Below, piece by piece: positions 5,729-12,353 of a stretch of 33,123 bases of DNA (position 1 is the stretch's first letter; every line of letters starts with the position of its first letter). Position numbers and translations under genes: made by a program. Location of the stretch: positions 1 to 33,123 of the forward strand of contig VJWM01000368.1 in NCBI GenBank assembly GCA_010909165.1. Reading direction: 5' to 3'. This DNA is from Anthoceros angustus (Eukaryota; Plantae; Anthocerotophyta). The notes under the pieces are model-generated. The model was given only the letters and a program-made list of their open reading frames with translations, did no database searches and was not told where the DNA came from.

Positions 5729-7977
5729 AAAGAAATTTAAAGTCCTTACATATAAAAAGGTAGCGAAATGAAAATTTAGATAAAGAGGTTAAACAAATGA
5801 ACCCTTTGCATCCAAATCCTCTGTTTTATTTCCTGTATTTAAGACTCTTTCTTGGTTTAGAGAAGAAACAAATATTTATTCCGAGATCGCAGTCAAGATT
5901 TCTCAAAATTGGGAGCCTCGATCTATGTCAAGCAGAGGAGTTTGCCAAGAATGGAAGCAACTGATTCAAGCAAGTAACTTATGGAAAAGCTCTATTTCCA
6001 AGAAGCTAGCAAAGTTTCCTCGTCAGAAAAAGAATCCGCTATAGGTACACTCCTTCGGAAATATTGTTAAAATTTTTTCCTTTTGCCTGTTAAAGAACTT
6101 GTCTTAGCCAGCAGGTATGCAAGAGCTGGTATGAATTAGGCAGAAACTGCACTTTGGAAATGTTTACTTGGGAAAACTTATCCTACTTTATCTGCTATAC
6201 TCGAGACGATGAAAATCTCTCCCAAAGATCTAATTGTGGCTCAATACAATATAGAAGCTAATCGTGTGCAAATTATTGATTTACTTCCTATGGCATTGGA
6301 AAAAGGATATAATAAAACTCGCAAGCAGCGTTTTCTTCTAATGGTAAGCATGTAATTATTTTAATAATGACCTACTTACCCTTCCTTGGGACATTGCTCG
6401 TGACATTGTTAGCCTTTGGGATGCTAATACGGGAAAATGTCTACAGGTTTGGGAGGAATTACTTGGAGCAAAGATCTATTTCTTTTCTTCAGGTAGCCAG
6501 TGGCTAATTATCAATAGATCTAAGTCCATTAGTCTTTGGAATGCCAACACAGGAGAATGTCTAAAAGCCATAGAAGAAGACCCATTGGGCTGACAAGTAT
6601 TCTTTTCTCCAAATAAGGAACGGCTAGTTACCTGGGGTAGCTCCATTTGCCTTTGGGATGCTAAAACGGGAGAATGCTCTACAGGCTTTAGAAAGACGGG
6701 AATAGAACATCGGAGTTCACAAACACCTTTTCTCCGGATGGCAAGTGGCTGTTTATCGATAGCTCTAAATCCGTTAGCCTTTGGGATGCTAAAACTGGGC
6801 AATGCCTACACACTTTGGAAAAACTGGATAAAAAAAGCCTGTTCACAGAATATCTTTTTCTCCAGATAGCGCGTTGCTAGTTATCACTAGTAATGAATCC
6901 ATTAGCCTTTGGAGTGCTAACACTGGGGCGTGCTTGTTTGGGATGAAATCAGTGAGGTAAGCTCAGTAACTTTTCACCAGATAGCCAGCAAATAGTTATC
7001 GACGACTATGAATTCATCTGCCTTTGGGATCTTAAAACTAGAGAATGGGTCTGCACTTTGGATGAATGCGGGATGCCTCCATCATATCTTTCAGATGGTC
7101 AGCGCCTAATTATTGAGAATAGGCAGTCTCTTTGCCTTTGGGATGTTAAAGCGGGGGAAAAGCTAAAAACTTTAGATGATAAGCTAGCGGCACACACCAC
7201 GGATAATCCTCTTTTCTCCCGACAACCAGCGGATAATTGCCGATACGGTGGATCTCATTCGCCTTTGGGATGCCAACACAGGAGAATGTCTACAGACTTT
7301 AGAAAAACTGGAAAAAAGAGTGGCTTGCAAAAATATCTTTTTCTTCAAATAGTGAAAAGGTAGTTATTTACCTCATCGACTCCATCCACCTTTGGGATGC
7401 ACAAACAGGGAAATGCCTAAAAATTTGGAAGAGCCTGGAAATTTCAAACAAGCATTTTTTCTCCAAACAGTCAATGGTTAGTTATTTCTGACCCACGTGA
7501 AGTTCAATTGTGGGATGCTCAAACAGGTGAATACTTGCGCCCTTTGGGAAAACACTTCGGATACGGGGATACGAGCCAGCATCCTTTTCTCCTAATGGGG
7601 ACAATTATTGATTGGAATGAAAGTTTTCGATTATTTCCCGCCTTAAAGCGGTAGTTTTCAACCCGCGGAATCTCCAAGAAATCTAGAAAAAGAGAGAGAG
7701 CAAACAATCCAACTGAAAAATTGGTAGCAAAAGATCTAAAAAGGAAAGCCAGAAGTGCTAAAAGCCAAGAAGATAGTAGCACCGTTTCAGCGGCCGTGGA
7801 ACATCTTCCACCTCCTCACCAGAAAAAGGAAAAAGGGGAGTAGAGTTAAGGTTTCTATATTTTAAGCATTTATTTTAAAGGGGTAATAAAGCAAATTTCC
7901 CATCTAGTGCTACAATAATTTGGCTCTTCGGGGGTTTACGTGGTAAAAGGTTTATCTAATACTTAAAGTAGTTAAAT
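5729..7977 (+). repeat. Tandem duplication, copy 1 (upstream region, gene and downstream region)
   Basis: Collinear with 8295-10545 from AAAGAAATTTAA through GTAGTTAAAT. Many substitutions between copies, roughly 80-90% identical by eye. Confidence 0.9.
5797..7843 (+). CDS. Eukaryote-like protein with two F-boxes and WD40 repeats, copy 1 (probable secreted effector)
   Basis: F-box 1: IYSEIAVKIFSKLGASDLCQAEGVCQEWKQLIQASNLWKKLYF (~5875-6000). F-box 2: PSEILLKIFSFLPVKELVLSQQVCKSWYEL..ALWKCLL (~6045-6170). Then about 10 LWD(A/N)xTGECL-type repeats roughly 120 bp apart and a basic C-terminal tail. Confidence 0.85.
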
Positions 7978-8294
7978 CTACATGCCTCAGCAAAAAATAA
8001 TTAGGAAATTTGAAGACTAATCAAGTAATATGTTTTCTTTAAAGGTTCAAACTAAGCGACTAAAAGCTATGCAAATAGATACACAAAACATCGATCATTT
8101 AGGATTAGTGGCTGGAATGTGTGAGGAAATAGGATTAGATTGACCTTATACCAAGCAGTAGGTAGCCAGGCGAAGAATAAGCATCTAACCTATGGGCAAG
8201 CTGTTAAATGTATGATCTTAAATAGATTAGGTTTGTAAGCCGGACGCTTACATGTATTCTGAGTACTTTGAAGACAAGCTCATTGACCATTTGT
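7978..8294 (+). mobile_element. Truncated IS left end with the 5' part of a DUF4277-type (IS1634/IS4-like) transposase (ATG at 8069)
   Basis: MQIDTQNIDHLGLVAGMCEEIGL..QAVGSQAKNKHLTYGQAVKCMILNRLGFVSRTL.MYSEYFEDKLIDHL matches the DHLGLVAG..ILNGLGF N-terminal block. It ends abruptly at 8294. Confidence 0.8.
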
Positions 8295-10545
8295 AAAGAA
8301 ATTTAAAATCCCTGCCTATAAAAAGGTAGTGAAATAAAAATTTAGATGAAGAGAAGTTAAATAAATGAACCCTTTGCATTCAAATCCTCCTGTTTTATTT
8401 CCTGTATTTAAGACTCTTTTCTTGTTTTAAAGAAGAAACAAATATTTATGCGGAGATTGCAGCCAAGATTTTCTCAAAATTGGGAGCCTCCGATCTATGT
8501 CGAGCAGAGGAGTTTGCCAAGAATGGAAGCAACTGATTCAGGCAAACTTATGGAAAAAGCTTTATTTCCAAAAGCTAGCAAAGCTTCCTCGCCAGAAAAA
8601 GAATTCTCACTGTGGTACACTCCTTCTGAAATGTTGTTAAAAATTTTTTCCTTTTTGCCTGTTAAAGAACTCGGCTTTAGCCAGCAGGTCTGAAGAGCTG
8701 GTGTGAATTAGGTGCAGACACTTCACTTTGGAAATGTTTACTTGGGAGAAACTTATCCTACTTTATCTGCTACATCCGACACGATGAAAGTCTCTCCCAA
8801 AGATATACTAGCGGCTCAATACAATATAAAAACTAATCGTGCGCAAATTATTGATTTACTTCCTTTGGCATTGGAAAAAGGACATAAGAGAACGCAAGCA
8901 GCGTTTTTCTAATGGTAAAGCATGTAATTATTTTAATAATGACTCACCTACCTTTCCTGGGGACATTGCTCGTGACATTGTTAGCCTTTGGGATGCTAAT
9001 ACGGGAAAATGTTTACGATTTTGGGAGGGAATTACTTGGAGCAGAGATCTATTTCTTTCTTCAGGTAGGCAGTGGCTAATTATCAAGAGATCTAAGTCCA
9101 TTAGTTTTGGGATGCCAACACAGGAGAATGTCTAAAAGTTTTAGAAGAAGACTCATTGGGTACAGAAGTATTCTTTTCTCCAAATAAAGAACAGCTAGTT
9201 ACCAGGGGTAGCTTCATCTGCCTTTGGGATGCTAAAACAGGAGAATGTCTGCAGACTTTAGAAAGACGGGAAACAAAAAATTGGAGTTCACAAACACCTT
9301 TTTTCTCCAGATAGCCAGTGGCTGGCTATCGATAGCTCTAAATCCGTTAGCCTTTGGGATGCTAAAACTGGGAAATGCCTACACACTTTGGAAAAACCGA
9401 AAAGAAAGTCTCTTCACAAAAATATCTTTTCTCCAGATAGAGTCGTTAGTTATCCATAGTAATGAATCTATTAGCCTCTGGAATGCTAAAGCCGGGAATG
9501 TCTACTCCATATTTGGGAAGAATACAGGGGAAGCTCGGTAACTTTTTCACCAGATAGCCAGCAACAGTTATTGACGACTATGAATTCATTCTGCCTATGG
9601 GATATTAAAACTAAAGAATGGGTCTGCACTTTGGATGAAAGCGGATGCCTCATCATATCTTTTCTTCAGACAGTCAGCGCCTAATTGCTGATAATGGGCA
9701 GATCTCTTTGTCTTTGGGATGCTAAAGCTGGAAAAAGCTAAAACTTTGGATGAAGAGCTAGAGGAATGGGCAGAAATAACCCTCTTTTCTCCCGACAACC
9801 AACGTATAATTGCCGATACCTTAGATTTCATTCGTCTTTGGGATGCTAGCACAGGAGAATGTCTACAGACTTTAGAAAAACCGGCAAAAAGATTGGGATA
9901 CAGAAATATCTTTTCTTCAAATAGTGAAAAGATAGTTATTCACCTTATCGACTCCATCCATCTTTGGGATGCACAAACAGAAATGTCTAAAAATTTGGAA
10001 GAGCCTGGAGATTTCAAACAAGCATTTTTTCTTCAAACAGCCAATGGTTGGTGATTTCTGACCCACATGATGTTCAACTGTGGGATGCTCAAACAGGTGA
10101 ATACCTGCACAGTTTGGGAAAACACTTCGGACATGGGGACACAAGCCGGCATCCTTTTCTCCTAATGAGGGACAATTATTAATTGGAATGAAAGTTTTCG
10201 ATTTTTCCCCGCTAAAAGCGATAGTTATCAACCCACGGAACCTCCAAGAAATCTAGAAAATGAAGAGAGACAAACAATCCAACTGAAAAATTGGTAACAG
10301 AAGAATCTAAAAAGAAAAGCCAGAAGTACTAAAAGCCAAAAGATAGTAGCAACGTTTCAGCGCTAGTGGGACATCGTCCGCCTTCTCCTCAGAAAAAGGA
10401 AAAAAGAGGAGTAGGTTAAGACTTCTAGATTTTCAAGCATTTATTTTAAGGTAATTATTTAAGCTAATTTCCCGTCTATCGCTACAATAATTTGGCTCTT
10501 CAGGGGTTACGTGTAAAGGCTTATTAATAGTTGAAGTAGTTAAAT
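8295..10545 (+). repeat. Tandem duplication, copy 2
   Basis: Collinear with 5729-7977. Confidence 0.9.
8365..10414 (+). CDS. Eukaryote-like protein with two F-boxes and WD40 repeats, copy 2
   Basis: F-box 1: IYAEIAAKIFSKLGASDLCRAEGVCQEWKQLIQ..LWKKLYF (~8444-8570). F-box 2: PSEMLLKIFSFLPVKELGFSQQV.KSWCEL..SLWKCLL (~8615-8740). LW(D/N) repeat cores at about 8988, 9106, 9222, 9351, 9475, 9594, 9712, 9836, 9962 and 10077. Confidence 0.85.
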
Positions 10546-10702: not shown

Positions 10703-11750
10703 TTACTTATAAAGGTTGTCTTTGAGAATTTTTATCTCTTCTTGTAGAGCTTTAATTATTTTTATGTATTTTCTATATGGTTGAGAAATACGCTAATATG
10801 GTTATGAATTTCGATAGGCTGGGCCGGTAACCCTCCGTACTTACCAGACGTAGGCAAGGATTTGGTCACCCACCGCGTCCGGCTAACATCACTTCATCGG
10901 CAATCTTAAGATGTCCTGCTACCGCTACTTGACCTCCCATCACGACATGACGGCCAGTTTTAGTGGAGCTGGCAATTCCTGTCTGAGCGACGATAATATT
11001 ATGAGCCCCTATCGTGACGTTATGTCCAATTTGCACAAGATTATCTATTTTAGAGCCTTTCTTAATATGCGTAGTTTCAAAGCGTGATCGATCGATAGTC
11101 GTATTGGCTCCAATTTCAACATCATCTTCTATTTCCACTTTACCTAATTGCTGCAGTTTAATGTGTTCACCAGCTTTGTTGGTAATATAGCCAAAACCAC
11201 AAGCTCCTATCACAGCACCTGGTTGTAGAATAACTCTATCTCCTAGGGGCAGCGTTCACGGATTACAGCCTTAGGATGGATAAGGCAATCTTTTCCTATA
11301 GTAACATAAGGACCTACATACTCCTGCACCAATAAAGGTGTTGTCATCTATTTTAGCTTCTTTATCTATAACAGCATGAGGTCCAATTTTACATTAGCGC
11401 CAATTTGGCACGTTTCGTGAATCACAGCTGTCGGATGAATTCCTTCAAAACCTGTAAGCTCTTCCTTCTCTTTAAAAAAGCATCAATTAATTGTTGAAAT
11501 GCTAAAGAAGGGTTTTCATTAATCAAAAGTTACGATCACCCGCCAAAGGCATATGCGAATTAACAAATATTACACCTGCATGAGATTTTTTGCATCGCTT
11601 GCTCATAGCGGGGTTTTCTAGAAAAGAGGCCTCTTTGGCACTCGTTTTTCTAGATCGGCAACCCTTCAATTTCATAATCAGGATTGCCTATCAGCTTTGA
11701 TTGTGTCATCGCTGCTATATGGGCCAGCTTAAAGGTTTTAAGGAATTCAT
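10703..11750 (-). CDS. lpxD: UDP-3-O-(3-hydroxyacyl)glucosamine N-acyltransferase
   Basis: [46 protein letters not shown] hexapeptide repeats. Syntenic after skp. Confidence 0.95.
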
Positions 11751-11767
11751 CGATTTCTCTTATGACT

Positions 11768-12353
11768 TTATGGATTGGATCCTGTGGATGTCTTTGGCTC
11801 TTTAACTTCTTTATCAAAAGCTCATCCATCACACTCACAATATCATCAGAAATATCTAATTCCCTTATCATAATAGTAAGCTCCTTCTTCGTTCATCACC
11901 ATGTGGTAGCCATACTTTTTAGCAACAGTTTCGGATGCTTGAGTGATCACATCAGCGAGCTTATCCAATATCTTATAATTAGCTTGTTGTATTGTGATAA
12001 TATTGCGACTGCTGTTGGCTTGCTTTTGGCTTAAAGTTCTAAATTTACGCTTAAGCTCTGTTTCCGCTTCAGGAGAGGCTGTCAAGATAGTCAGGATCAT
12101 TAAGCTTATCGGCCATCTCATTCAATGTTTTTCTTTTCGCCTAGCATTGTTTCCATTTGCTTTTGAGCGCTTCAAAGCTAGCTTGTTCTTGTTTGCCTAA
12201 TTTGGATTTTCTACGCAAGTCTTAAAGTTTACCAGACGCATTTTAATTCCTTGATCAGCTTTAGCTGCGGAGGCTTCTATTGCTGCAGGACATAGGGCTA
12301 CTAAAGCGAAACTTACGCTAACTGCTTGCAGGATTTTTAGATAACTTTTTCAT
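11768..12353 (-). CDS. skp: OmpH/Skp periplasmic chaperone
   Basis: Signal peptide, then VNFKTCVEKSKLGKQEQASFEALK..EMADKLNDPDYLDSLSPEAETELKRKF..DISDDIVSVMD. Lies between bamA and lpxD. Confidence 0.9.

Follow-up and report, generated by a model that had tools for sequence, protein, structure and literature searches.

Does the locus analyzed here encode proteins with two F-boxes each, and, if it does, what could the additional F-box be doing? The locus lies in contig VJWM01000368.1 of the Anthoceros angustus genome assembly (GCA_010909165.1), of which the whole stretch of 33,123 nucleotides was analyzed (hereafter, the window). It comprises two tandem genes, copy A and copy B, and a preliminary description made from the letters of the DNA had assigned to each of them two complete F-boxes (F-box 1 and F-box 2) ahead of a WD40 array. 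F-box effectors are a well-known route by which bacteria hijack host ubiquitination. To our knowledge, the characterized bacterial F-box effectors and the eukaryotic FBXW receptors all carry a single F-box. From the results described below, we consider it reasonably probable that the two genes are intact members of a tandem family, restricted to the Parachlamydiaceae, that mimics substrate receptors of Skp1-Cul1-F-box (SCF) ubiquitin ligases, and that the product is an exported adaptor in which F-box 2 acts on Skp1-Cul1 and F-box 1 is a second functional module.

Homology searches and a comparison of loci identified the window as a Neochlamydia locus in an error-rich assembly. The genus is an amoeba symbiont, in agreement with the amoeba-associated chlamydial origin proposed earlier. 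Intact relatives were retrieved when 1.84 billion representatives were searched in full by HMMER with a profile (A2) of the helical linker that follows F-box 2. Four true relatives were found: P0001 (694 residues, 136 bits), an "F-box/WD40 repeat-containing protein" of Neochlamydia sp. S13 (AP017977.1); P0003 (688 residues) of Candidatus Protochlamydia amoebophila; and P0004 (619 residues) and P0005 (516 residues), both of Parachlamydia sp. AcF125. A 2899-residue ankyrin/STAND protein (P0002) also appeared in this search; it was a repeat artefact and was excluded as a relative. Further close relatives were present in Neochlamydia sp. TUME1 and in other Neochlamydia. At the S13 locus (L001) the gene was present in four tandem copies, all intact and 690-694 residues long, the first of which (g1) is P0001. 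In these intact genes, F-box 1 was joined to F-box 2 and the WD40 region in one uninterrupted open reading frame (ORF).

In the raw window, Pfam recognized only complementary half-matches on stop-free pieces because frame breaks split each box. F-box 1 of copy B matched PF12937 over profile positions 7-24 (16.1 bits) and 25-47 (16.9 bits) in different frames, and F-box 2 matched the same family over profile positions 5-22 in copy B (18.4 bits) and 25-37 in copy A (13.5 bits). In each of the intact proteins P0001, P0003, and P0004, Pfam found two F-box-like and two F-box stretches, followed by families of WD40 propellers. When the N-terminal halves of three of the four S13 copies (g1, g2, and g4) were scanned separately, F-box 1 alone (Pfam residues 29-70) scored 45.6, 41.6, and 39.1 bits and F-box 2 alone (Pfam residues 85-127) scored 57.3, 55.3, and 56.0 bits against PF12937, all above the cut-off of 24.3. 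For g1, PF00646 (cut-off, 20.5) likewise gave 29.9 bits for F-box 1 (residues 1-80) and 39.0 bits for F-box 2 (residues 81-140). The two matches did not overlap. F-box 1 was a full-length F-box by profile, with all the hydrophobic core positions kept. The Fbw-type, eukaryote-like architecture of two F-boxes ahead of WD40 repeats was therefore borne out in both paralogues by frameshift-aware alignment and by the intact orthologues. The mapped boxes together span 5868-6169 in copy A and 8438-8743 in copy B, close to the 5875-6170 and 8444-8740 first proposed, and the spacer between them is 14 residues, compared with the estimate of about 15.

The preliminary description had also taken the frame breaks in the two genes to be sequencing errors. 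Only 16 ORFs of at least 100 residues occurred across the whole 33-kb window, and bamA, lpxD, fabD, and trxB matched their NCBIfam models only as fragments. Reading the coding strand required at least 4-9 frame shifts in each kilobase; a minimum-frameshift reading gave only 10-13 shifts and wandered through open junk frames, so that it too is a lower bound from which the true path differs. When the intact proteins were searched against the window by plain tblastn, almost nothing matched, the in-frame pieces being too short, and breaks were therefore counted by frameshift-aware alignment of the intact proteins to the window. Copy A was identical to S13 g1 at 645 of 694 residues, with 28 frameshift breaks (13.4/kb) and what look like in-frame stops at two positions, 6591 and 7644. 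Copy B was identical to its closest relative, the TUME1 protein P0009, at 618 of 690 residues with 33 breaks, and to S13 g2 at 574 of 690 residues with 31 breaks (15/kb). The housekeeping neighbours were equally broken: lpxD was identical to S13 lpxD at 327 of 352 residues with 12 breaks (11.4/kb), and ompH to S13 ompH at 181 of 198 residues with 9 breaks (15.2/kb). Assembly error is the parsimonious reading because the F-box genes were no more broken than lpxD and ompH, and both F-box genes are most likely intact in the living bacterium, the approximately 30 frame breaks in each copy being introduced by the assembly. Against this conclusion stand the two apparent stops of copy A, which would have to be errors as well. 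Together with the number of breaks, these stops would fit a reading in which both genes are true pseudogenes of this strain and the breaks are mutations. So would a one-base deficit at the equivalent site inside F-box 1 of both copies (5936 and 8508), but when paralogues have a break in common, an assembly error that is systematic and depends on sequence context is indicated. The majority of breaks were one-base deficits at short base runs, and the S13 and TUME1 orthologues were intact. With these results and the fragmentation of bamA, fabD, and trxB and of ORFs throughout the window, we regard decay of the two genes as hardly credible. Across the whole window breaks occurred at about 11-15/kb, housekeeping genes included, and its gene content is better read through intact Neochlamydia orthologues than through ORFs.

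The window and the S13 locus were approximately 92.6% identical, with many gaps, and had the neighbours lpxD, ompH, and bamA in common, which in S13 come after the four copies. They differed in copy number, with two copies in the window (5729-10545) and four in S13 (L001:9930-20048); in the latter, a small DUF4277 ORF after each copy separated the copies. The closest relative of copy A was S13 g1 and that of copy B the TUME1 protein. The two copies of the window, a tandem duplication on the plus strand, were 85% identical in DNA and differed by some fifty one-base insertions or deletions, mostly at short base runs. The difference between two and four copies is either a true strain difference or a collapsed repeat in the assembly. 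Protochlamydia (L002) and Parachlamydia (L003) likewise had tandem pairs, at unrelated sites in their genomes. The double F-box layout was conserved in three chlamydial genera. Some Parachlamydia relatives, P0005/P0013 and the gene adjoining P0012, had F-box 2 only, and in one region (L003:10625-12493) a member with a single canonical F-box lay directly beside a double F-box copy. The single-F-box members in Parachlamydia indicated that F-box 1 has been gained or lost within the family.

The two F-boxes within one protein were 40% identical over 42 residues, and this fits an internal duplication of which F-box 1 could be a decaying, functionless leftover. The loss of the Leu-Pro pair from F-box 1 in two genera would fit as well. 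To compare constraint, the ratio of nonsynonymous to synonymous differences (pN/pS) was summed by segment over the four S13 paralogues, with small counts and pairs that are not independent. The ratio was 0.16 for F-box 1, 0.40 for F-box 2, 1.16 for the helical linker, and 0.72 for the WD40 region, the last of which suggests that the part predicted to bind substrates is diversifying between tandem copies. Across genera, F-box 1 was 55-62% identical, F-box 2 34-43%, and the linker 45-52%. Since F-box 1 had both the lowest pN/pS and the highest identity across genera, it is the most constrained segment and no relic. It was also kept in all four S13 copies, in both Protochlamydia copies, and in one Parachlamydia copy. 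We therefore regard the leftover reading as very unlikely; the additional box is the most conserved part across three genera and must do something.

Among solved structures, the best match to F-box 1 was beta-TrCP2/1 (26.7 bits). F-box 1 of a Parachlamydia member (L003:8001-8225) aligned without gaps to human beta-TrCP1/2; the alignment included the Leu-Pro pair, a spacer of five residues, and a motif of eight residues that was identical in both. Ahead of F-box 1, a weak alignment (E ~0.04-0.09) was obtained with the residues just upstream of the beta-TrCP1 F-box. This similarity hints at a eukaryotic, beta-TrCP-like donor for F-box 1. Residues 17-276 of human Fbw7 (2ovp_B) aligned with residues 82-346 of the protein (98.7 bits). 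This alignment covers F-box 2, the linker, and the first repeats, and so puts F-box 2 at the canonical place with respect to the propeller.

The product, of about 690 residues, consists in order of a short conserved leader, F-box 1, the spacer, F-box 2, an Fbw7-like linker, about 10 WD40 repeats, and a basic tail, and would mimic a eukaryotic SCF substrate receptor in a gene family restricted to the Parachlamydiaceae. The protein would probably be exported into the amoeba; related F-box families of Neochlamydia and Protochlamydia have been proposed as secreted effectors (PMC4209131). F-box 2 would dock on host Skp1-Cul1 with the geometry seen in Fbw7 and beta-TrCP, and the propeller would offer proteins of the host to be ubiquitinated, perhaps in the nucleus. 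F-box 1 stands where Fbw7 and beta-TrCP have a dimerization domain (D domain) and would act as a second functional module, under stronger constraint than F-box 2.

The Leu-Pro pair, which in F-boxes stands at the start of helix 1, bears on how F-box 1 might act. The pair was kept in F-box 2 of most members, with Leu-Ser in F-box 2 of Protochlamydia. In F-box 1 of Neochlamydia and Protochlamydia it was absent at either possible position, including the one at beta-TrCP spacing, and Ile/Ala-Tyr occupied the position that corresponds to Leu-Pro of F-box 2. Replacement of Leu-Pro by Ala-Ala abolished the binding of Legionella AnkB to SKP1, and the same substitution is stated to abolish SCF1 polyubiquitination in eukaryotes (PMC2790608). 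Since AnkB needs Leu-Pro to bind SKP1 and F-box 1 of these two genera lacks it, contact of F-box 1 with a second Skp1 may be possible but is far from given. One alternative is that F-box 1 no longer binds Skp1 and, as a helical accessory module, serves self-association, regulation, or the binding of some other partner in the host, so that it would stand in for a D domain. Its place upstream of a canonical F-box-linker-WD40 unit is that of a D domain, and both the missing Leu-Pro and the weak beta-TrCP1-like alignment before the box are in keeping with this alternative. However, residues 1-80 of the S13 protein matched only F-box families at E values up to 1, with no match to Beta-TrCP_D or another D-domain family. 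The complete profile match and intact core of F-box 1, and the Leu-Pro retained at beta-TrCP spacing in the Parachlamydia member, also speak against a module that has left Skp1 behind, and very high conservation is what would be expected of a segment binding the highly conserved Skp1. We consider the accessory module a possibility worth keeping in view, though a doubtful one. We lean slightly toward the view that F-box 1 still engages a Skp1-type surface despite the loss of Leu-Pro in Neochlamydia. In the strongest form of this view, both F-boxes would bind host Skp1 at once through a contact of F-box 1 that does not depend on Leu-Pro, and one polypeptide would carry two Skp1-Cul1-Rbx1 arms, as a built-in dimer of SCF or else as a sink for Skp1, outcomes that the preliminary description had suggested; we think this form rather unlikely. 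If it were true, the protein would do in cis what Fbw7, Cdc4, and beta-TrCP do through their dimerization domains. Binding of a second Skp1 by F-box 1 would make the protein a natural single-chain SCF dimer and a tool for studying how SCF dimerization affects chain building, and binding of another partner would be a new use of the F-box fold.

Several results besides the missing Leu-Pro weigh against the proposed exported SCF-receptor mimic. The WD40 region had ten LWD-type repeats of about 41 residues each plus a closing segment, a number hard to reconcile with the 7-8 blades that Fbw7 and beta-TrCP have. AlphaFold2 (AF2) modelling on a 14-sequence family alignment gave a mean predicted local distance difference test (pLDDT) score of 69.5. 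The propeller was mostly at 75-94 and the linker was well predicted, but residues 1-86 were below 50, so that the fold of F-box 1 is not confirmed by the model, and F-box 2 reached only 50-60. Helices were placed at the F-box positions (26-38, 41-50, and 52-60; 89-98, 101-110, and 112-117) with pLDDT 30-60, and residues 1-190 modelled alone had a mean pLDDT of 43.7, too low to judge the fold or arrangement of the boxes. In a Foldseek search the full model matched generic WD40 proteins, including Fbw7 (E = 8e-19); TM-scores to solved propellers were low (<=0.55), which is consistent with a propeller of an unusual repeat number (~10). Skp1 binding by either box is a prediction, and secretion and nuclear targeting are inferred from family context, eukaryote-like domains, and motifs only. 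The motifs in question are two KKRK-type basic clusters in the C-terminal tail (A3 columns ~740-794) that look like a eukaryotic nuclear localization signal (NLS); conservation of the clusters extended over Neochlamydia, Protochlamydia, and one of the Parachlamydia relatives, but P0004/P0012 lacked them.

Among the closest known systems, Fbw7 and Cdc4 (PDB 2OVP and 1NEX) likewise have a Leu-Pro F-box that is followed by a helical linker and then by a WD40 propeller. The present genes differ in being bacterial, in having a second F-box in place of the dimerization domain and about 10 repeats instead of eight blades, and in the NLS-like tail. In beta-TrCP1/2 (FBXW1A and FBXW11; PDB 1P22 and 6WNX), to which F-box 1 was most similar, the F-box directly precedes the linker and propeller; in the present proteins a further F-box lies between. 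Legionella pneumophila AnkB, GALA, and VirF are bacterial F-box mimics that hijack Skp1-Cul1 and are active in amoebae (PMC2790608; PMC2244805). They have a single F-box with ankyrin or leucine-rich repeats (LRR), and their secretion and SKP1 binding were established by experiment, whereas in the present family both are predictions. The NEX1 and NEX2 families (Domman et al. 2014, PMC4209131) come from the same genera and are eukaryote-like E3 adaptors with tandem or expanded paralogues; in them a single F-box (or a BTB or RING/U-box domain) is combined with LRR in NEX1 or with tetratricopeptide repeats in NEX2, and not with WD40. In that study WD-40 received only a generic mention, and neither a WD40 family nor a double F-box was described (PMC4209131). 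Bacterial proteins combining an F-box with WD40 have been mentioned in general terms (PMC2244805).

A literature search for two F-boxes in one protein gave two passing remarks only and no characterized example, in agreement with the earlier statement that no characterized protein with the double F-box and WD40 layout was known. The remarks concerned GmFBX505 of soybean, from a set of 725 F-box proteins (PMC5412402), and one Dictyostelium RasGEF (PMC1273635), both uncharacterized. The partner domains of these two proteins differ from those found here, and the likeness is in motif count only. The genes of the present family are already annotated in public genomes, so that the novelty lies in the apparently unstudied variant with two F-boxes and not in the gene itself. 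The positions of the two copies and their neighbours in the window are listed in Table 1.

Table 1. Positions of the two double F-box/WD40 genes, their parts, and two neighbouring genes in the window
Feature	Position	Strand	Basis and remarks
Copy A, double F-box/WD40 gene	5797-7843	+	Frameshift-aware alignment to S13 P0001
Copy A, F-box 1	5868-6001	+	Residues ~25-70; beta-TrCP-like, without Leu-Pro; 4 frame breaks inside
Copy A, F-box 2	6044-6169	+	Residues 85-128; canonical, with Leu-Pro; 4 frame breaks inside
Copy A, helical linker from F-box 2 to propeller, family-specific	6170-6324	+	Linker profile retrieved the whole family; aligns with the Fbw7 linker
Copy A, WD40-like repeats (~10, period ~41 residues)	6325-7640	+	Motif scan, Pfam beta-propeller families, AF2 strands
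Copy A, C-terminal tail with two basic NLS-like clusters	7641-7840	+	Family alignment A3
Copy B, same gene	8365-10414 (end approximate)	+	31-33 frameshift breaks, no in-frame stop
Copy B, F-box 1	8438-8571	+	One frame break, at the same site as one copy A break
Copy B, F-box 2	8613-8743	+	One frame break
Copy B, helical linker	8744-8897	+	Mapped from intact orthologues
Copy B, WD40-like repeats	8898-10222	+	Motif scan
Copy B, basic clusters of the tail	10223-10413		KKRK-type
lpxD	10706-11750	-	Alignment to S13 lpxD
ompH	11771-12353	-	Alignment to S13 ompH

Searches with the linker profile against genome contigs and against metagenome contigs (by exact eight-residue patterns) found nothing and apparently met no Neochlamydia record. 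Nothing was found when a piece of BamA was used as a synteny anchor against genome contigs, and an exact look-up of the 280-residue BamA ORF gave no match. Elsewhere in the window, positions 853-1215 of the minus strand matched part of a transposase of the IS1634 family (NCBIfam NF033559, 52.9 bits).

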